From positions 1 through 64,000 of the IMG/VR virus record IMGVR_UViG_3300010938_000951: a stretch of DNA of 64,000 bases. One strand, written 5' to 3'. Position numbers and translations under genes: made by a program. The first letter of the stretch is position 1. The number at the start of each line of letters is the position of its first letter. This document shows positions 2,648 through 60,401 of this stretch, piece by piece. The notes under the pieces are model-generated. The model was given only the letters and a program-made list of their open reading frames with translations. It did no database searches and had not been told where the DNA came from.

Positions 2648-3147
2648 AAATAGTATTTCTTGACATAGACGGTGTGTTCAATTCGGCCAACTACAACAAC
2701 TCAGAGAGATATCTCTTAGAAACTGCGGGTATGTCAGACGCCGAGATTATGTTGATTGCGCACCACACTCATCTCGACCCTCTATCAATTCAAATATTCA
2801 ATGATTTGATTAAGCGATCTGGAGCTGTAGTTGTTTTATCTTCTACATGGCGAGCCCGTTATTCTCCCGAAGAGATGACCAAGATGCTACAGGATCGAGG
2901 TGCCGAGTTTGAGATTAAGGAATCCACACCAATTCTTTTTGGTAAGATGTCCTCTCGTATCCCAAGAGGAAAAGAGATTGCTGCCTATTTAAAAGGATTA
3001 CAAGAGCAACCAGAGTCATTTGTTATTCTTGATGATCATGATGATATGTTACATCTTAAGCCGTTTCTTATTCAAACATCTGTAAAAACGGGTATTACTA
3101 TTCAAGATGTTGAAAAGGCTCTCAAAATTCTAAACGGAGACAAGTAA
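2644..3147 (+). CDS. HAD-family phosphatase (Swiss-army-knife RNA-repair-like HAD)
   Basis: FLDIDGV motif I, VVLSSTWR, RGKEI, FVILDD. Confidence 0.8.
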   Translation: MKIVFLDIDGVFNSANYNNSERYLLETAGMSDAEIMLIAHHTHLDPLSIQIFNDLIKRSGAVVVLSSTWRARYSPEEMTKMLQDRGAEFEIKESTPILFGKMSSRIPRGKEIAAYLKGLQEQPESFVILDDHDDMLHLKPFLIQTSVKTGITIQDVEKALKILNGDK

Positions 3148-3148
3148 G

Positions 3149-3646
3149 ATGCATTGGTGTATGGATGAAACACTTGCGTTATTGGCTATGATTCCTGTCA
3201 TTGGCTATTTCTTTCGCAAGCTTCATGTCTGGTGGCATGAGAAAATTTCTCATACTTGTCATGAAAAACATTGTGATGAAACTCATGCAGAGCATCCTGA
3301 GTTTCAATTTTCACCCAACTCTCCTTATCATCCCGATAATTGGCATAAGCCTGTGATTGTATCTGATCAAGACATGGAATATTTGCGAAGAGCACCAGCG
3401 CCATTGAAGATAACAATACCTGTTACTATTTGGGATTCTATTGAACAAGAAGATGTTGCTGAACGTTTTGGCAATGACTTAGTTATCTTTTTGTACGCAG
3501 AGCTAGAAGATGCCGGACTTACTAATATTAGTAAGGAAGAAGTGCATTGGTATATCAATGACAAAGCAGAACTTCAAGTAGAAGTTCGTGACAAAATATT
3601 TCTTCATGATTATCAAACTTGCGAATATGGATGGAGAATGGCATGA
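3149..3646 (+). CDS. hypothetical protein with N-terminal hydrophobic helix
   Basis: ORF in operon. Confidence 0.55.
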   Translation: MHWCMDETLALLAMIPVIGYFFRKLHVWWHEKISHTCHEKHCDETHAEHPEFQFSPNSPYHPDNWHKPVIVSDQDMEYLRRAPAPLKITIPVTIWDSIEQEDVAERFGNDLVIFLYAELEDAGLTNISKEEVHWYINDKAELQVEVRDKIFLHDYQTCEYGWRMA

Positions 3647-5792: not shown

Positions 5793-6274
5793 AGTTTAAA
5801 GAAGGTGATAGGGTTGGGGCTGGTGTAGATGAAGAGGGTGGGTTTACTAAGAAACTTCGCTATGATGGCGAATTTTGTGATGGTCCAGTCTTCGGCAAAG
5901 TAACGGATGTTATTTCTGCTACTAAGGTAAAAGTCTTATGGGACGATAATTACCTTAATGATCATAGCGATTCATTTAGTAAGAAAACTGGTAAATTGCT
6001 AAAGTCTATCCCAGTTCCGCGAGAGATGGATGTAAAGTTTCTATTGCCCGAAGAGGAATGCAAAAAGAAATTTTCTGAGCTAGAAAAAGAATATGAAGAT
6101 ATTGCAGTCCAAGTTCGCGCCAAGCTAAAGGAAGCTGGATCTTTGATTAAAGAAGCCAATAAGCTTGCTAAAAAAGCTGGGGCTGATTCTTTAGCTGATA
6201 TGTATGATGCAATTGACCCGCTTGAGTCGGCTATGGATGCTTGTGGTTGGCGCAGTTCTTCTTGGAGTTGTTAA
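5789..6274 (+). CDS. hypothetical protein
   Basis: C-terminus GWRSSSWSC resembles that of 16820..17155. Confidence 0.6.
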   Translation: MKFKEGDRVGAGVDEEGGFTKKLRYDGEFCDGPVFGKVTDVISATKVKVLWDDNYLNDHSDSFSKKTGKLLKSIPVPREMDVKFLLPEEECKKKFSELEKEYEDIAVQVRAKLKEAGSLIKEANKLAKKAGADSLADMYDAIDPLESAMDACGWRSSSWSC

Positions 6275-6275
6275 G

Positions 6276-6698
6276 ATGGATACCGTATATGTTTTAATGG
6301 AAGAGGGATGGGAATATAATGATGAGATTTATTTCCGTTCAGAGGGCGGAAGTGGATCGCCTCATTCTTTCTTTACTGATAAAGAAAAAGCCCAAGCGGA
6401 ATGTGATAAGCGCAATCTAGATTCCTTTAGAAAACTGTGGGAGTCTGGAGAGATTCGTGAGTATTGTTATGGGTTTGATGATCTTATCCCATACAACAGT
6501 CGGAAAGATAGAGCAAAACGCAAAGCGTTAGACAAGATTTGTGAGAAGATTTTCGGCAAGGATTTCGGGGAAATTTCCGAAGATTTTTACAACGATGAAG
6601 ATGTAAAAATCGAATCAAGATCCGATGAAGATTGGAAAGAACTCATGTCTTATTTAAAGCTTAATTTCTGGGAAGTAGTTCCGGTAGAAAAGGGATGA
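6276..6698 (+). CDS. hypothetical protein
   Basis: ATG just after upstream stop. Confidence 0.6.
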   Translation: MDTVYVLMEEGWEYNDEIYFRSEGGSGSPHSFFTDKEKAQAECDKRNLDSFRKLWESGEIREYCYGFDDLIPYNSRKDRAKRKALDKICEKIFGKDFGEISEDFYNDEDVKIESRSDEDWKELMSYLKLNFWEVVPVEKG

Positions 6699-22616: not shown

Positions 22617-22734
22617 GGAGCGGTGGCGGAATGGCGTACGCGGGTGCGAGAGGGAAGTGCATTTCCCTCAAACACCTATTCCAAACTGATGCTACCAGTA
22701 GGAATTGCACGTTCAACTCGTGCCCGCTCCACCA
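22617..22734 (+). ncRNA. tRNA-like RNA with enlarged anticodon and variable arms
   Basis: GGAGCGG/CCGCTCC-ACCA acceptor, D arm, T arm GCACG-TTCAACT-CGTGC; 118 nt. Confidence 0.8.
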
Positions 22735-41202: not shown

Positions 41203-41285
41203 GGGGGAGTAGCTCAGAGAAAGAGCGCAAGGAGTCCGTAAGGAAAACCTTGAGGTCCCAGGTTTAATTCCTGGCTCCCCCACCA
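41203..41285 (+). ncRNA. tRNA-like RNA with anticodon loop replaced by a GNRA hairpin
   Basis: GGGGGAG/CTCCCCC-ACCA; CAAGG[AG-TCC-GTAA-GGA-AAA]CCTTG. Confidence 0.75.
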
Positions 41286-41326: not shown

Positions 41327-41403
41327 GGGACAGTAGCTCAGTGTTAGAGCACCGGCCTTTAACTGCCGGGGGTCGCTGGTTCAACTCCATGCCTGTCCCA
41401 CCA
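41327..41403 (+). tRNA. atypical tRNA with 8-nt anticodon loop CTTTAACT (identity undetermined)
   Basis: GGGACAG/CTGTCCC-ACCA; bulged T stem. Confidence 0.65.
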
Positions 41404-42892: not shown

Positions 42893-42979
42893 TCTGCGGT
42901 AGCCTAATGGTAAGGCAGGCGGCTGTTAACCGCCCGGTGGTAAAACACTTTCTAGGTTCGAGTCCTAGCTGCAGAGCCA
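42893..42979 (+). tRNA. tRNA-Asn(GTT) with long variable arm
   Basis: loop CTGTTAA; extra arm GGTG-GTAAAA-CACT. Confidence 0.85.
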
Positions 42980-43344: not shown

Positions 43345-43419
43345 TCCGCTCTAGTGTAATTAGCACGACGATCCTTTTTCGGGTCGGGGGTCATGGTTCG
43401 AGTCCATGGGGCGGAGCCA
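43345..43419 (+). tRNA. atypical tRNA (T-rich anticodon loop, identity undetermined)
   Basis: TCCGCTC/GGGCGGA-GCCA; arm CGATC-CTTTTTCG-GGTCG. Confidence 0.65.
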
Positions 43420-46232: not shown

Positions 46233-46559
46233 ATGGAAAAGAAAATTCCAACTATGAAGGATCTCAAAGAAGGTCCGCCATTACTCTGTCCAATTTGTGA
46301 CAGACCAAATTATTTTCCATCCGACCATCATATGGTACCAAAGTCTAGGGGCGGTAAAACTACCGAAACTATTTGTGAAGATTGCCATAAAGCAATTCAT
46401 GCGCATTTCACCAATAAAGAATTAGAAGAAACGTATCATACGCCAGAAGCTTTGCTATCTCATGAGGGGTTTGCAAAACAGATTAAATTCCTTTCTAAAC
46501 AGGATCCTGGTGGCCGAACCAAAACGAAAAAGAATAAAGATCGTTTGAGGCGAGAATGA
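46233..46559 (+). CDS. small HNH nuclease-like protein
   Basis: CPIC..HHMVPKSRGG..CEDCHKAIH. Confidence 0.8.
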   Translation: MEKKIPTMKDLKEGPPLLCPICDRPNYFPSDHHMVPKSRGGKTTETICEDCHKAIHAHFTNKELEETYHTPEALLSHEGFAKQIKFLSKQDPGGRTKTKKNKDRLRRE

Positions 46560-52505: not shown

Positions 52506-52859
52506 ATGGCCAAGGTCATTAGAACTTGGGCATTCATCATAGGCCAACTAGTTTTTGTGGTTGGCTGGTTTAGTGGACATCACTTCTTCCCACAGCATTT
52601 ACCTTTCGAGGTATTACAAATCTTACTTCTCACTGAAGGTTGCTGTATTGGATCAGTTTTCTTGATGAATCAGCATCGCGAGCAATCATTGGATCGTCGC
52701 ATTGCAATAAATGATTACATTGTTAATTGTCAGATGAGAAATGATGTGAAAGAATTACTCAAAGACGCCGAAAAGAAAAATAATTTTTGGTGTGTAGGTT
52801 GCGGGGAACCGCGATATAAATGTGCTTGCGAAGAGCAAACGCAACTTCGTCAAAGCTAA
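52506..52859 (+). CDS. membrane protein (DUF1003-like)
   Basis: TWAFII..TM..PF..L...LMNQ.R. Confidence 0.5.
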   Translation: MAKVIRTWAFIIGQLVFVVGWFSGHHFFPQHLPFEVLQILLLTEGCCIGSVFLMNQHREQSLDRRIAINDYIVNCQMRNDVKELLKDAEKKNNFWCVGCGEPRYKCACEEQTQLRQS

Positions 52860-52895
52860 AGTTTCTATGAATATTCAAGTATCATAGATACTCAT

Positions 52896-52969
52896 TCAGG
52901 GATCGTCTAATGGTAGGACCGCGGCCTTTGACTCCGCAGATACAGGTTCGAATCCTGAGCCCTGAGCCA
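52896..52969 (+). tRNA. tRNA-Gln(TTG)
   Basis: loop CTTTGAC, GCCA. Confidence 0.85.
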
Positions 52970-52985
52970 GGTCAGTTAAGTATAC

Positions 52986-53059
52986 TGGAGCATCGTCTAA
53001 CGGCAGGACAACGGACTCTGACCCCGTTTATCTAGGTTCGAATCCTAGTGCTCCAGCCA
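52986..53059 (+). tRNA. tRNA-Gln(CTG)
   Basis: loop CTCTGAC, GCCA. Confidence 0.9.
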
Positions 53060-53063
53060 GTAT

Positions 53064-53137
53064 TCTCCGATCGTCTAATGGTAGGACGGGTCGCTCTGAA
53101 CGATCAAATCGAGGTTCGAATCCTCAGCGGAGAACCA
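53064..53137 (+). tRNA. tRNA-Gln(CTG)
   Basis: loop CTCTGAA, ACCA. Confidence 0.82.
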
Positions 53138-53297
53138 GCAACAAATGCCAGCTAGGATTACATAGCTCGCAACTATTTTCCCCGCCAGCCCGAGAGGGCA
53201 AATAAACTTTTATTTTTTATGTTACTAACACGGGGAAATGTTCAAGTCGGTCTGAAAAACCGATAAGGAACTCTTCTTGGCACCTTTAGTTGTTGCT
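53137..53297 (+). ncRNA. Y-like scaffold RNA 9 (two anticodon-like stem-loops)
   Basis: AGCAACAA/TTGTTGCT, GGATTACAT; ATAG-CTCGCAA-CTAT and TCGGT-CTGAAAA-ACCGA. Confidence 0.7.
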
Positions 53298-53303
53298 AAA
53301 TAT

Positions 53304-53404
53304 AGCAGATTGGAGCAGCGGTAGCTCGCCAGGTTCACAATGGGGCTGATGCCCTATAAGGATACCCTGGAGGTCGTGTGGTTCGATTCCCTCATCTGCA
53401 ACCA
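53304..53404 (+). tRNA. initiator-type tRNA-Met with 25-nt insert in the anticodon
   Basis: 1:72 mismatch, TGGAGCAG..GGTAGCTCG D arm; CCAGG-TTCA[25 nt]TAC-CCTGG. Confidence 0.8.
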
Positions 53405-53412
53405 AAACAATC

Positions 53413-53808
53413 ATGAACCCTAAAGAAGTTGGCGAGAAAACAGAAGCCGCCATCCTAAATCATTTCATCCAAAAAGGCGTTTCAGTATCATTGCCGTGGG
53501 GTAATAACCAGCGCTATGATATGATTATTGATGTAGATGGTAAACTTCTTAAAGCACAATGTAAAACTGGCACCTACAAAAAGGGTGTCATTTCTTTTTC
53601 TACTAGCAGCAAAGCTGGCGGAAAAGAACGTAAAGATTATAAGGGTCAAATTGATTGTTTCTTAGTTTATTGTGAACAGCTAAACAAATACTATAAAGTA
53701 GACATTGAGGGTTTACATAATGTAAATGCTATGTCTCTTAGAGTTGATCCTCTTAAAAAGTTTGGTCCCAAGTCTGCCATTAGGTGGGCAAAAGACTATG
53801 AAGTATAA
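53413..53808 (+). CDS. PD-(D/E)XK homing endonuclease, I-Ssp6803I-like
   Basis: GEKTE..G..VSLPWG...RYDMIIDVDGKLLKAQCKT. Confidence 0.85.
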   Translation: MNPKEVGEKTEAAILNHFIQKGVSVSLPWGNNQRYDMIIDVDGKLLKAQCKTGTYKKGVISFSTSSKAGGKERKDYKGQIDCFLVYCEQLNKYYKVDIEGLHNVNAMSLRVDPLKKFGPKSAIRWAKDYEV

Positions 53809-53826
53809 CAGATATTAAGTTGTCAT

Positions 53827-54207
53827 ATGGATCCCGTACTGAAAGCACTTTTAAATTCTATGAAGTGCCCTGTATGTGGCGGTCAGATTGATGGTGTAAC
53901 AAAATTCCATTGTGCATTTAGCAAACAGCACTATAGTGTTGTAATTGATAATGACAATTTCCCCATCCGCATTACTCATGAATACGTAAGAGTAAATGAT
54001 GGACATAAACAGTATTATATTATTCAATCTGAGAATAGAACAGAGATTAATATTTTACAATTGAATGGCGACTATGAAGTAATTCCGCCAGACAAAACAC
54101 AGCCGGCTCCTAAGCCATTTGTTTACGATAAAAGACTTTTTGTTTTCTCGAAAACCAATCGAGAAAAACTAATTAACAAGGTCAAAACCATTTTGGTTTT
54201 CTCCTAA
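53827..54207 (+). CDS. hypothetical protein
   Basis: CPVC N-terminus. Confidence 0.6.
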   Translation: MDPVLKALLNSMKCPVCGGQIDGVTKFHCAFSKQHYSVVIDNDNFPIRITHEYVRVNDGHKQYYIIQSENRTEINILQLNGDYEVIPPDKTQPAPKPFVYDKRLFVFSKTNREKLINKVKTILVFS

Positions 54208-55170: not shown

Positions 55171-55692
55171 GTGAAGGTACATGGTCCATATAAAAGAAAA
55201 GATGGTCGTCAAATTGTTATCGTCGTTGAAGATGACGGTACAAGGCGAACTATTTCCTATCCTAAATGGTTATTAGAATTACAATTAGGTCGCAAGTTAG
55301 ATCCAGATTTGGAAACTGTAGACCATATTGATAGTAATTTTGATAATAACGATTTAGATAATCTTAGAATAATGCCACGTAAGGATCATTCTACTGAAGA
55401 TACTAGACGTGTAAAATTAGTTCAATTTACCTGTCCTTGGTGTAAAAAAGATTTCGAACGTAGTCCACGTCTAGTAAGAGATAAGGCTCGTAAAAATAAG
55501 GCCGGACCTTTTTGTTCTAGAAATTGTGCCGGTAAGTATAGTCGAAAATTGCAACTTAAATTAATTGATAAATTTGATACGCAGCCAGTTATTGATTCAG
55601 AATATTACAAGAAAAAGTATGTAAAAGCTTTTTCTTCAATTATCGATAGTGATGCGTTAATTGATTTTATTTGTGACGTGTGGGAAGAATAA
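55171..55692 (+). CDS. HNH endonuclease
   Basis: VDHIDSNFDNNDLDNL..H; CPWC..FCSRNC. Confidence 0.85.
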   Translation: MKVHGPYKRKDGRQIVIVVEDDGTRRTISYPKWLLELQLGRKLDPDLETVDHIDSNFDNNDLDNLRIMPRKDHSTEDTRRVKLVQFTCPWCKKDFERSPRLVRDKARKNKAGPFCSRNCAGKYSRKLQLKLIDKFDTQPVIDSEYYKKKYVKAFSSIIDSDALIDFICDVWEE

Positions 55693-57830: not shown

Positions 57831-58169
57831 GTGAAAGTTATGAGCTTACCTTGGTCACGAGATATGCAATTAGATCCTGGCACATTTGGAGGGTCTCCAG
57901 CATGTCATGTATTAGTTGATATGATGAACAAAAATGTGATTCCTGTTCAGGAAAAACATCGAGTTCTATCATTCATTAGCGGTACTATTTTGCATTTCAA
58001 GGCCATCTCTGCCATCAAAGAAAGAGGTATAAGGGCACGGGTTATGGTGCTTTTGAAAAATGATCTGTTTTCCAGAATAGATCAAATGCCATATCCAGCT
58101 CATTTCAACTCTTATCTGAAGAACGTAGTAAATCACCACTTCAGGCGATACTTAAAAGAAGTAGTCTAG
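57831..58169 (+). CDS. hypothetical protein
   Basis: ORF whose end overlaps RNase P helix P1. Confidence 0.5.
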   Translation: MKVMSLPWSRDMQLDPGTFGGSPACHVLVDMMNKNVIPVQEKHRVLSFISGTILHFKAISAIKERGIRARVMVLLKNDLFSRIDQMPYPAHFNSYLKNVVNHHFRRYLKEVV

Positions 58170-58488
58170 ACAATCGCTCTGCAAGGAGAGGAAAGTCGGA
58201 GCTACATAGGACAGTCTGCTGGCTAACGGCCAGGCGTAGTAATACGACGGAAAGTGCAACAGAAAATAAACCGCCCGCAAGGGTAAGGGTGAAATGGTGA
58301 GGTAAGAGCTTACCGCATGTTTGGCGACAAATATGGCAAGGCAAACCCCAGATGTAGCAAGCTAAACAGAGAGTGACTTGTCCGGTCAATACTCTCGGGT
58401 TAGTGCTGGAGCCGTCAAGTAATTGTCGGCCAAGATTAATGATTGTCTCGATTTATAGACAGAACTCCGCTTATAGGGCTACTTCTTT
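58155..58488 (+). ncRNA. rnpB: RNase P RNA (bacterial type A)
   Basis: P1 AAGAAGTAGTC/GGCTACTTCTT; GAGGAAAGTCGGAGC, GGAAAGTGCAACAGAAA, GGGTGAAA..GGTAAGAGC, GGCAAACCCC, ACAGAACTCCGCTTA with compensatory P4. Confidence 0.95.
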
Positions 58489-58510
58489 TAAGTTCTTTTA
58501 AGGAATTATT

Positions 58511-59040: not shown

Positions 59041-59733
59041 ATGGCAGATAAAGTTACCACCGTTAGCGCAAAAGGTTGCGTTGTAACAGATTTTGATACG
59101 GCTACATTTGCACTCTCATTTAATGAGTTTGCTCCTAAAGCCAAAGACGCAAAGCTGAAGCTAAAGAAAGGTGCAGCTAAGATTACAGCGGCCCTTGATG
59201 ATCTCAAGAAACGTGGGTTGGAGTTTTTAACCAACAACTATCGCACTAATATTACAGTGCAACCAAATTATGTTTATGACCGTTCGTCCGGCCAAAACAG
59301 AATGGAAGGACAGAAGGCAACTTACTCTGTAACGTTCCAAACTCCTACACTAGAAATGGTTAGTGAAGCATACGATCTACTTTCTGAATTGGAAGTGAAT
59401 GAACTTTCAATTAATTCTCCTGCTTATTCTGTCAGGTCCGAAGCGCAATTTAAGCAACAAGCATTGGAAGATGCTTGGAAGGTAGCTCAAGTTTTGTTTG
59501 CTAATCAGTGCAAGGTTCTTGGGTTTGATGAAACTAAATTCTCTGTTGATAGCTGGCAGGTTAATTATAGTGGCCATGACCATGGTGGATTTGCTAAGGG
59601 TCGTAGCTATTCAAACTCTGTGCTAGCGGCATCAGCTTCGGCTGATTATGGTGATGAAGCCATTGAACTAAATGCTGGCCGTGCTATCATTGAAGTAGTT
59701 CTGACTGTCGATTACGTTCGTACCGGATCATGA
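59041..59733 (+). CDS. SIMPL (DUF541) domain protein
   Basis: VTTVSAKG...D.A, ITVQPNY.Y, QQALEDA pattern. Confidence 0.7.
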   Translation: MADKVTTVSAKGCVVTDFDTATFALSFNEFAPKAKDAKLKLKKGAAKITAALDDLKKRGLEFLTNNYRTNITVQPNYVYDRSSGQNRMEGQKATYSVTFQTPTLEMVSEAYDLLSELEVNELSINSPAYSVRSEAQFKQQALEDAWKVAQVLFANQCKVLGFDETKFSVDSWQVNYSGHDHGGFAKGRSYSNSVLAASASADYGDEAIELNAGRAIIEVVLTVDYVRTGS

Positions 59734-60401
59734 AAATTAAGCTAGCCTATCCTAAAATTCCTGATACTTTAGACTGTCCACTCAAGCAATGTATTGCTTT
59801 TGAAAAATTGGATGGAACTAATTTGCATTGGGTTTGGAATAGGGAAAAAGGCTGGCATGCTTTTGGTACTCGCCGAGATAGATTTAATCTAGATGAACAA
59901 GGAATTGCTTCTTTCAACCAAGCACATCCCGGACTGGAGGAAGCAATTTCCTTGTTTAGAAAATCGTATGAGCATCTCGCTGAGTATCCACTTAAACATA
60001 AATATGGTCCAATATCAGAATCCACGGGTGACGTAATTCTATTTACAGAGTTCCTTGGAGATAAATCTTTTGCTGGTTCTCACCAAAAAGGCGACCCCAA
60101 AAGATTAGTATTATTTGATGTAATGACTGATAAAGGAATAACTCCACCAGATCAGTTTGTGATTGATTTTGGACAGTTTGATGATATTCCGGGATATTAT
60201 ATTCCACAAATTGTTTTTAGTGGAAAGTTTTCAGGACAATTATTTGTAGATGTTAGGAAAAACAAGTTCAAAGTAAACGAGGGCGTGGTTGTCAAAGGTA
60301 TGTTTGCCGGGCAAGTTTACATGGCCAAGATTAAGACGACTGACTATTTAGAGCGCCTAAAGAAAGAATTTAAAAACGATTGGAAAAATTATTGGGAATG
60401 A
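59730..60401 (+). CDS. RNA ligase (Rnl2-like adenylyltransferase domain)
   Basis: YPKI, EKLDGTN, TEFLG, LFDV, EGVVVK, AKIKT. Confidence 0.85.
   Translation: MKIKLAYPKIPDTLDCPLKQCIAFEKLDGTNLHWVWNREKGWHAFGTRRDRFNLDEQGIASFNQAHPGLEEAISLFRKSYEHLAEYPLKHKYGPISESTGDVILFTEFLGDKSFAGSHQKGDPKRLVLFDVMTDKGITPPDQFVIDFGQFDDIPGYYIPQIVFSGKFSGQLFVDVRKNKFKVNEGVVVKGMFAGQVYMAKIKTTDYLERLKKEFKNDWKNYWE

Follow-up and report, generated by a model that had tools for sequence, protein, structure and literature searches.

Why would a phage carry an initiator-type tRNA-Met gene that is split within its anticodon by a 25-nt hairpin, and is the presence of a homing nuclease-like gene immediately downstream of it a coincidence? 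We addressed this question at a locus in a 64,000-nt stretch of DNA (hereafter the window) that forms the start of a 267-kb soil phage record (IMGVR_UViG_3300010938_000951) with 67 tRNAs. A first-pass annotation, made from the sequence alone, had described an initiator-type tRNA-Met with a 25-nt anticodon insert, followed after 8 nt by a free-standing I-Ssp6803I-like gene. It proposed that the insert protects this allele from the nuclease (collaborative homing), and that it must be removed by a protein-dependent route, or else that the tRNA is a non-decoding mimic. All of its sequence statements held when re-examined. Its interpretation is supported in part: the initiator-like character of the tRNA, the family of the nuclease and the association between insert and nuclease were corroborated, while cleavage of the uninterrupted arm and removal of the insert from the RNA remain inferences.

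An initiator-type tRNA gene interrupted within the anticodon

Positions 53304-53404 (+) read as a tRNA, with a score of 39.8 bits against Rfam RF00005 (gathering threshold 29) and a 27-nt insertion in the anticodon loop, and ARAGORN, with introns allowed, called a tRNA-Met(cat) with a 25-nt intron. The 5' part of the gene (53304-53337, +) comprises the acceptor 5' strand, in which A1 is unpaired with A72, a D arm with A11:U24, the anticodon stem 5' strand CCAGG and the loop nucleotides TTCA (U32 U33 C34 A35). The 3' part (53363-53404, +) carries TAC (U36 A37 C38), the anticodon stem 3' strand CCTGG, the variable loop, a T arm with a bulged T, the acceptor 3' strand, the discriminator A and an encoded CCA. 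Removal of the insert (53338-53362, +) generates the loop TTCATAC and restores the anticodon CAT; because of a repeated A, 53337-53361 is equally valid, and the insert thus lies between anticodon nucleotides 35/36 or 34/35. The insert carries a GGGC/GCCC hairpin that extends to 7 bp with a G-U pair (ATGGGGC-TGAT-GCCCTAT), folds better than 999 of 1000 shuffled sequences, and ends in GGA, which can pair with U32-C34. The extended anticodon arm has a z value of -3.4. The interruption is not an assembly artefact, since the same interrupted gene occurs in at least 12 distinct alleles from independent assemblies.

The tRNA is initiator-like. Among the 11 interrupted alleles that were aligned, positions 1 and 72 are unpaired in 10 and A11:U24 is present in 10. 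The three consecutive G:C pairs at the base of the anticodon stem of bacterial initiators are, however, reduced to two (30:40 and 31:39), pair 29:41 being A:U in 10 of 11 alleles. The uninterrupted orthologue from the related locus L110 matches, at 79%, the E. coli tRNA-Met gene that lies between argG and rimP, with a median of 4 matches per E. coli genome. This gene is metY, an initiator.

Upstream of the locus, three tRNA-Gln genes (52896-53137, +) form a flank that is conserved in all relatives. Downstream, the conserved flank is a gene for a 126-aa, zinc-ribbon-like protein (53827-54207, +). In most relatives a second tRNA(CAT) lies between the nuclease and this gene; the window has lost it. 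A megablast search of the locus against deposited phage genomes returned no match, a promoter and terminator scan around the locus gave nothing convincing, and a second 'intron'-bearing tRNA called by ARAGORN (Ser, 22617-22734) had no Rfam support.

The downstream gene belongs to the I-Ssp6803I family

An 8-nt spacer (53405-53412, +), with no evident Shine-Dalgarno sequence, separates the CCA from the ATG of a 131-aa open reading frame (53413-53808, +). The product matches PF11645 (PDDEXK_5) with an E value of 1.3e-29 and 103.4 bits against a cut-off of 26.1, covering profile positions 1-136 of 138, and its best sequence hit in the PDB is I-Ssp6803I (2OST, E 3e-5). Residues E11, D36, Q49 and K51 are invariant among 26 homologues, and D36, Q49 and K51, which constitute the family's D...QxK variant of the (D/E)xK motif, align with YD and QVK of 2OST. 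The AF2 model (pLDDT 87) was compared to known structures with Foldseek, where ranks 1-4 were all chains of 2OST (TM 0.67-0.76, best E 1.6e-8), four orders of magnitude ahead of the next hit, Hjc (4.5e-4). The gene is free-standing: sensitive Rfam scans of 52800-54000 and 40500-64000 identified no group I intron or any other ribozyme in or around the insert.

The insert travels with the nuclease gene in related phages

We reasoned that if the insert shields the tRNA gene from the nuclease, the two should occur together in relatives, as the first-pass annotation had also suggested should be examined. Among syntenic loci whose tRNA has the same anticodon arm, all 8 distinct alleles with an intact nuclease gene (the window's and those of loci L002, L051, L053, L056, L057, L059 and L141) carry a 25-28-nt insert at the same anticodon position, and none has an intact nuclease without an insert. 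Two alleles have the insert and a nuclease remnant (L006, 18 codons; L114, 5 codons), and three have the insert only (L115, L105 and a contig in run X16). Four (L104, L110, L102 and L109) have neither, and in L104 and L110, which read TTCATAC without interruption, the tRNA directly abuts the next tRNA. The association gives a Fisher p value of 0.015, which is not corrected for relatedness; the alleles are related, and the counts are not independent. No PF11645 gene was found anywhere in the records of L006 (359 kb), L104, L110 (480 kb, rated 100% complete) or L106.

Empty and occupied loci interleave on trees of flanking genes. On the tree of the flanking orf308, the empty L110 is sister to the window plus L107 (support 97), and the empty L102 and L104 group with the occupied L051 and L059, indicating that insert and nuclease changed state together more than once. 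Together these data support a mobile unit composed of a free-standing homing nuclease and a target-splitting insert.

The association has limits. Nuclease relatives with 74% (L139/L140) and 64% (L063/L064) identity lie next to uninterrupted initiator-type tRNAs that have a different arm (GC-CTCATAA-GC), and one (L062) follows a tRNA-Gln, with no tRNA-Met(i) at all. The insert is therefore one way, and not the only way, for a neighboring tRNA to differ from the presumed target.

It could be argued that the linkage is coincidental, the nuclease homing to another nearby site, such as the inter-tRNA spacer or the T arm as SegB does, with the insert hitch-hiking because it lies 50-70 bp away. Indeed, free-standing phage nucleases usually cut within a few hundred bp of their own gene, with co-conversion of flanking markers (PMC2330249), and some relatives of the nuclease sit next to other tRNAs (Gln, Thr). 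We consider this unlikely, since the only characterized family member targets exactly this part of exactly this tRNA type, since none of the 8 intact nucleases was found beside an uninterrupted arm of the same sequence, and since the design recurs independently. In the related phage locus L108, a 26-nt hairpin lies inside the anticodon of the tRNA-Gln(UUG) orthologue, with an HNH gene 36 nt downstream, in a spacer that is 3-15 nt in relatives.

The possibility that the PD-(D/E)XK protein is itself the splicing enzyme, in a maturase-like role, was also considered, since it is adjacent to and co-occurs with the insert, and since PD-(D/E)XK proteins include tRNA-intron endonucleases (PMC3424549), the tRNA-splicing endonucleases sharing this fold superfamily. 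This is very unlikely: interrupted alleles persist where the nuclease is deleted, with no other copy in a 359-kb record, close relatives of the nuclease occur where there is no insert, and the nearest structure is a DNA homing enzyme and not EndA.

The interrupted alleles are probably under RNA-level constraint

Of twelve distinct interrupted alleles, eleven were folded and aligned; these carry ten distinct insert sequences of three unrelated sequence types. All adopt the same fold, a simple hairpin in an insert of 25-29 nt that ends in GGA, and each hairpin beats shuffled sequences at 0.001-0.05. Inner stems covary within one type (GGCGC/GCGCC, GGTGC/GCACC and GCGTC/GACGC). The hammerhead-like CUGAUG in the window's insert is not conserved in the other alleles and is a coincidence. 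Among interrupted alleles alone, 92.7% of cloverleaf cells are paired, against 82% in shuffles (0 of 500 as high) and about 35% when partners are slid, and eight pairs changed on both sides, including T-arm variants that lie between the insert and the nuclease. An RNA-level role is thus likely, although stem variants are shared between interrupted and uninterrupted alleles, and part of the covariation could have been imported by recombination rather than selected after the insertion.

These observations bear on the possibility that the insert is a repair scar that made the gene both resistant and dead, the phage relying on the host initiator tRNA while a pseudogene is carried along with the nuclease. 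In its favor, no splicing machinery was identified, the window's T stem has a U-U mismatch and a bulge, and the locus degrades in relatives, with nuclease remnants and a decayed third tRNA-Gln in L006. However, the hairpin is kept through complete sequence turnover, with compensatory changes and a fixed length range and GGA end, cloverleaf pairing is maintained, and the bulged T, also present in uninterrupted alleles, is a lineage trait and not decay. We thus regard a dead gene as unlikely.

In RNA data, only one run held a related sequence, as a single unspliced contig that also lacks the nuclease; its depth is 2.4 and it could be DNA carry-over or precursor, and is not decisive, although it is compatible with both the dead gene and a further alternative, in which the unspliced RNA is itself the product. 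This would be a non-decoding tRNA-like RNA with an extended anticodon arm, for example a decoy for host anticodon nucleases or another tRNA-binding factor. Conservation of the structure, and the heavy investment of these phages in RNA repair, which suggests pressure from host tRNA nucleases, could fit this view, and the non-decoding mimic is not excluded. It appears improbable, however, since it does not explain why the insert is tied to the nuclease gene or why relatives do without it, and since the flanking loop nucleotides stay exactly TTCA...TAC, as if a CAU loop must be restorable.

The insert does not correspond to a bulge-helix-bulge (BHB) intron. Instead of two 3-nt bulges separated by a 4-bp helix, the folds of the 11 alleles show one 3-nt bulge (U36 A37 C38), a 2-3-bp helix and a symmetric internal loop. 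By our reading of these folds, BHB-rule cuts would give CAU in only 2 of 11 alleles, the others yielding CAC, CAA or CAG, often with a pyrimidine at position 37. EndA (PF01974) was absent from the phage record G000, which is rated 62% complete, and RtcB (PF01139) was absent from the five related records G000-G004. The phage does encode Pnkp and Rnl1/Rnl2 ligases: G000 carries two Pnkp-like genes, one Rnl1-like gene and three Rnl2-like genes, with a Pnkp/Rnl cassette at 149-158 kb of the genome, but Pnkp and ligase genes are also present in phages with the uninterrupted allele, and are not specific to the insert.

Discussion

The explanation that we favor, with moderate confidence, is that the insert and the nuclease gene form one selfish, mobile unit within the tRNA array of a soil jumbo phage. 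The nuclease gene sits in what is otherwise a 2-3-nt spacer between the initiator-type tRNA-Met gene and the next tRNA(CAT) gene. By analogy with the family's one characterized member, which is only about 21% identical, the nuclease would cut the near-palindromic DNA of the uninterrupted anticodon arm (CCAGG-TTCATAC-CCTGG type) in co-infecting relatives that lack it, and repair from the nuclease-bearing genome would copy in the nuclease gene together with the nearby insert. The insert, at the exact center of that arm, would push the two half-sites about 25 bp apart, so that the carrier genome is not cut. Once the unit is fixed, the nuclease gene would decay and be lost while the insert stays, and such stages are seen in relatives. 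At the RNA level, the insert behaves like a constrained mini-intron. We believe that it is most likely cut out by a protein endoribonuclease that we could not identify, the loop then being resealed by the phage's own T4-like Pnkp/Rnl1 repair enzymes or by a host ligase. In this scheme the anatomy of the locus, the family assignment, the co-distribution and the structural conservation rest on the analyses described here, while the cleavage target, the immunity and the excision are inferred.

A more far-reaching possibility, which we put forward only tentatively, is that these hairpins represent a new class of intron: 25-29-nt elements inside the anticodon of phage tRNAs, excised by proteins (an unknown endoribonuclease plus the phage's sealing enzymes, or host enzymes), and maintained because they make the tRNA gene immune to free-standing homing nucleases of at least two families (PD-(D/E)XK and HNH). 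The 3' tail of each insert is complementary to the last nucleotides of the 5' exon, and this pairing may guide excision. To our knowledge, this would be the first protein-dependent tRNA splicing in the bacterial world.

Homing nucleases are thought to persist either inside self-splicing introns and inteins or next to genes whose target site differs by point changes. Here, the shield appears to be a tiny hairpin in the most sensitive part of a tRNA, and the whole life cycle can be read from metagenomes, as empty site, occupied site, decaying nuclease and orphan insert. If the interrupted tRNA still works, bacteria or their viruses must have a way to excise short introns from tRNA without a ribozyme, which is not known to have been reported.

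Comparison with known systems

Archaeal and eukaryal BHB tRNA introns, spliced by EndA and RtcB, share with this insert, if it is excised as proposed, a short, protein-dependent intron in the anticodon loop, exon-intron pairing and a 3-nt bulge next to the anticodon stem on the 3' side, but lie at 37/38 rather than inside the anticodon, and the second bulge at the right spacing is missing here. The enigmatic tRNA introns of Lak megaphages (bioRxiv 10.1101/356790) are also conserved inserts of unknown type in tRNA genes of large phages, with coexisting alleles with and without the insert. They were reported without a partner nuclease or mechanism, in gut phages and in other tRNAs, and some are long enough to contain a tRNA-like sequence; excision of short introns as considered above would provide a testable explanation for the unexplained tRNA introns of other huge phages.

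Phage T4 SegB (PMC2330249), of the GIY-YIG family, provides a precedent for a free-standing homing nuclease whose gene is inserted between phage tRNA genes, which recognizes tRNA-gene DNA and drives preferential inheritance of the surrounding tRNA region. SegB belongs to a different nuclease family and recognizes T-arm DNA, and no protective insert has been described for it. Collaborative homing, in the strict sense, pairs a free-standing nuclease with a self-splicing group I intron (PMC3984707). As in that case, a free-standing nuclease gene lies here next to a gene interrupted at the presumed target site, relatives without the nuclease can have the uninterrupted gene (L104, L110), and the interruption would confer immunity, both being inherited together; here, however, the interrupting element is a 25-29-nt hairpin with no ribozyme, the host gene is a tRNA, and removal from the RNA, if it occurs, needs outside factors.

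The closest known system is I-Ssp6803I, which is encoded in the group I intron of the Synechocystis PCC 6803 tRNA-fMet gene (PMC1995217) and binds a 23-bp pseudo-palindrome as a tetramer (PMC3384342), its specificity for the tRNA(fMet) anticodon region being stated in the title of Bonocora and Shub 2001 (cited in PMC3984707). The Pfam family, the predicted fold and the D...QxK motif are the same, and both genes are associated with an initiator-type tRNA-Met gene interrupted in the anticodon loop. In the phage, rather than the cyanobacterial chromosome, the gene is free-standing and downstream of the tRNA, and the interruption is 25 nt instead of a 655-nt self-splicing ribozyme. The phage protein is a candidate new sequence-specific enzyme related to I-Ssp6803I.

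Identification of the interrupted tRNA gene and its neighboring nuclease

The 266,899-bp IMG/VR virus record, of which the window is the first 64 kb, has a GC content of 39% and is estimated to be 62% complete by CheckV; its relatives occur mainly in soil and root metagenomes. Almost all long ORFs lie on the + strand. ARAGORN identified 67 tRNA genes in the record, two of which carry the anticodon CTA (amber suppressors; G001, a related record, also has two), while three have odd anticodon loops that are read as anticodons of 4 nt (ttaa, tttt) or 2 nt (cg); the positions recorded for these unusual tRNA genes are window 41327-41403 and 43345-43419, and genome 173300-173377 and 176544-176700. 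In addition, tRNA-Asn (42893-42979) and tRNA-Arg (genome 127990-128073) have long extra arms, and Rfam detected one more tRNA, at 41203-41282, that is missed by ARAGORN. A full-length bacterial class A RNase P RNA is encoded amid the tRNA arrays (window 58158-58489, + strand; 279.9 bits, gathering threshold 100), and the related phage contig L105 has one too (6068-6397; 257 bits). A virus carrying its own RNase P ribozyme is unusual.

At 53304-53404, the Rfam tRNA model scores 39.8 bits, with 27 nt inserted in the anticodon loop, and ARAGORN, when introns are allowed, calls a tRNA-Met(CAT) with a 25-nt intron. The first-pass annotation had placed a 25-nt insert at 53338-53362 of an initiator-type tRNA-Met gene lying beside a free-standing I-Ssp6803I-like endonuclease, and this observation is confirmed; the coordinates are correct, with a 1-nt ambiguity caused by a repeated A, and the insert therefore lies between anticodon positions 35/36 or 34/35. 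The insert contains a 7-bp hairpin that folds better than 999 of 1000 shuffled sequences. With introns allowed, ARAGORN also calls a tRNA-Ser(aga) with a 23-nt intron and a non-canonical loop at 22617-22734, but a sensitive Rfam scan found nothing there, and this is probably a false call.

An ORF of 131 residues starts eight nucleotides after the encoded CCA. It matches PF11645 over its full length (E 1.3e-29), and its only significant sequence match in the PDB is 2OST, I-Ssp6803I. When an AlphaFold model of the protein (pLDDT 87) was compared to known structures using Foldseek, the four chains of 2OST were the top hits (TM up to 0.76, E 1.6e-8), far ahead of Hjc resolvases and SPARDA nuclease domains. 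E11, D36, Q49 and K51 are invariant in 26 homologues, and D36 and Q49-x-K51 align with YD and QVK of I-Ssp6803I. Our confidence in the assignment to this nuclease family is very high.

We next examined whether the tRNA carries initiator features. Among 11 interrupted alleles, positions 1 and 72 are unpaired in 10 and A11:U24 is present in 10, but only two of the three canonical G:C pairs of the anticodon stem are present. The uninterrupted orthologue from L110, a related phage, matches E. coli tRNA-Met genes at 78-81% identity, at a median of four places per genome, one of these being the gene between argG and rimP. This gene is metY, an initiator gene, and E. coli has four initiator genes. 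'Initiator-type' is therefore a fair description.

Distribution of insert and nuclease among related phages

Relatives were collected through the nuclease protein, through DNA patterns of the anticodon arm, and through the conserved HNH gene located about 1.8 kb downstream. The locus is syntenic in a clade of jumbo phages with contigs up to 480 kb, in the order tRNA-Ala genes, a DUF1003 gene, two or three tRNA-Gln, the initiator-type tRNA-Met, a second tRNA(CAT), a zinc-ribbon ORF, a 308-aa ORF and an HNH gene. Two HNH endonuclease genes lie within or beside the tRNA arrays of the window (46233-46559 and 55171-55692), and the second (173 aa, HNH_3 plus a zinc finger), which is conserved at 72-90% across the clade, served as a synteny anchor. 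The window has lost the second tRNA(CAT) that follows the nuclease, or follows the tRNA-Met directly, in nearly all relatives: when 53808-53830 is compared to L051 (915-991) and L110 (3031-3108), the nuclease stop codon runs straight into the sequence that follows that tRNA elsewhere. The other tRNA-Met of the record (genome 76074-76148) is of a different type.

Four states were found among alleles whose arm reads GG-TTCATAC-CC. The insert is accompanied by an intact nuclease gene between the two tRNAs in the allele of the window (WIN) and in those of the related loci L002, L051, L053, L056, L057, L059 and L141. It is accompanied by a nuclease remnant in L006/L107, where 18 identical codons are followed by a frameshift and deletion, and in L114, where five codons remain. 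The insert occurs without a nuclease in L115, which has an 18-nt spacer to the next tRNA, in a contig of RNA run X16, and in L105/L106, which carry a third insert type in a sister tRNA type. Lastly, neither insert nor nuclease is present in L104 and L110, where the tRNA-Met abuts the next tRNA with a 2-3-nt spacer, nor in L102/L103 and L109. In L002 (= L021; 336-725), the 79%-identical nuclease gene has an in-frame TGA where the window protein has Gly (YKGQ against YT*Q); either it is a fresh pseudogene or that phage reads TGA as a sense codon. In the 359-kb relative holding L006, the third tRNA-Gln upstream of the interrupted tRNA-Met is decayed, and only its 3' end is recognisable (300-375).

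No PF11645 gene was found anywhere in the records holding L006, L104, L110 (rated 100% complete) or L106, and no intact nuclease was found beside an uninterrupted arm of this sequence. The association of nuclease (intact or remnant) with insert gave a Fisher p value of 0.015, not corrected for relatedness. On trees of the flanking genes, empty and occupied loci interleave: the empty L110 is sister to WIN+L107 with support 97, and the empty L102/L104 group with the occupied L051/L059. Insert and nuclease therefore changed state together more than once. This is the pattern expected of a homing element, with invasion, fixation, decay of the nuclease, and an orphan protective insert.

Some relatives refine this picture. 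Two relatives of the nuclease, L139/L140 (74% identity) and L063/L064 (64%), follow uninterrupted initiator-type tRNAs, but with a different anticodon arm (GC-CTCATAA-GC), and L062 has the nuclease after a tRNA-Gln and no tRNA-Met(i). More distant family members also sit next to tRNA genes, namely Gln in L004, Thr in L117, and Met on the other strand in L118. Upstream of a 50%-identical nuclease in L003, a high-GC viral contig, lies what looks like the 3' half of a tRNA (T arm, acceptor strand, ACCA) on the opposite strand (2925-3000), although ARAGORN and Rfam find no complete tRNA there. The family as a whole lives in tRNA arrays, and in this view the insert would be needed only where the neighboring arm would otherwise look like the presumed target.

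The anticodon arm is the likely target by analogy with I-Ssp6803I, which is encoded in the 655-nt group I intron of the Synechocystis tRNA-fMet gene (PMC1995217) and binds a 23-bp pseudo-palindromic target as a tetramer (PMC3384342). The uninterrupted arm of the phage gene is a near-palindrome because of the anticodon stem, and the insert sits at its center. The architecture of the locus, the family of the nuclease and the joint distribution of the two parts are established by the sequences, whereas cleavage of the uninterrupted arm, its abolition by the insert, and any removal of the insert from the RNA are inferred. The first-pass annotation had interpreted the insert as protecting this allele from the nuclease, in a form of collaborative homing, and as being removed by a protein-dependent route; these proposals are supported only in part. 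That insert and nuclease form one mobile, self-protecting unit is more likely than not, while excision of the insert from the RNA is a more tentative proposal, somewhat less than evenly supported.

Probable structural constraint on the interrupted RNA

Twelve distinct interrupted alleles were found. The eleven that were folded and aligned carry ten distinct insert sequences in three unrelated types, while the twelfth, L141, shares the insert of L002 and has a further T-arm variant. The inserts share only their length (25-29 nt), their position and a terminal GGA. All eleven fold alike, with the 5-bp anticodon stem, U33-C34 (or U32-C34) paired with the GA/GGA end of the insert, a 2-3-nt internal loop, a 5-7-bp hairpin, and U36 A37 C38 as a 3-nt bulge. 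Within the type A inserts, changes in the stem mostly turn Watson-Crick pairs into G-U pairs, which only matter in RNA, and within type B the inner stem is replaced by fully compensated variants.

Among interrupted alleles alone, the cloverleaf is 92.7% paired, as compared to 82% in shuffles (0 of 500 as high) and about 35% when partners are slid. Eight pairs changed on both sides, including T-arm pairs that lie between the insert and the nuclease. This argues that the interrupted gene makes a constrained RNA. Some stem variants are shared with uninterrupted alleles and could have been imported by recombination, and the argument is thus good but not conclusive. The only evidence from RNA libraries is one unspliced contig, with a depth of 2.4.

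Possible routes of excision

The insert is neither a group I intron nor any ribozyme recognized by Rfam. It is not a bulge-helix-bulge (BHB) intron either, since only one bulge is present and, by our reading of the folds, BHB-rule cuts would give CAU in 2 of 11 alleles. No EndA or RtcB is encoded in five related records. The phage does encode a T4-like RNA repair set at 149-158 kb (locus L116, genome 149127-158223), which comprises two Pnkp-like genes, an Rnl2-like, an Rnl1-like, an Hsp20, a second Rnl2-like and a metallophosphoesterase, as well as a weak, sub-threshold Macro-domain match. A third Rnl2-like gene lies in the window at 59730-60401. In T4, Pnkp and Rnl1 heal and seal breaks in a tRNA anticodon loop. 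The sealing half of a protein-dependent route is therefore available, although no cutting enzyme was identified, and these genes are also present in phages with the uninterrupted allele, relatives with and without the insert having the same ligases.

A second case in tRNA-Gln

An independent case was found in L108, a related phage in which the orthologue of tRNA-Gln(UUG) (3441-3540, mislabeled tRNA-Lys by ARAGORN) carries a 26-nt hairpin insert inside the anticodon, at 34/35 or 35/36. An HNH endonuclease gene (PF01844; 3576-4091) starts 36 nt downstream, and occupies what is a 3-15-nt spacer between the two tRNA-Gln genes in relatives. This insert begins with TGCAGG and has GCA before its tail, like the type B Met inserts, and its tail (CAAA) is complementary to the preceding loop nucleotides, just as GGA is in tRNA-Met. 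The design thus recurs with another tRNA and another nuclease family.

Comparison with known systems

Unexplained tRNA introns have been noted in Lak megaphages (bioRxiv 10.1101/356790), and our literature searches found no report linking such inserts to homing nucleases. If excision of the insert by proteins were to hold, it would represent a new kind of bacterial or phage intron. As inferred here, the element works like collaborative homing (PMC3984707) and like T4 SegB in the tRNA cluster (PMC2330249), and its nuclease is a member of the I-Ssp6803I family; it differs in that the protective element is a minimal hairpin and not a ribozyme.
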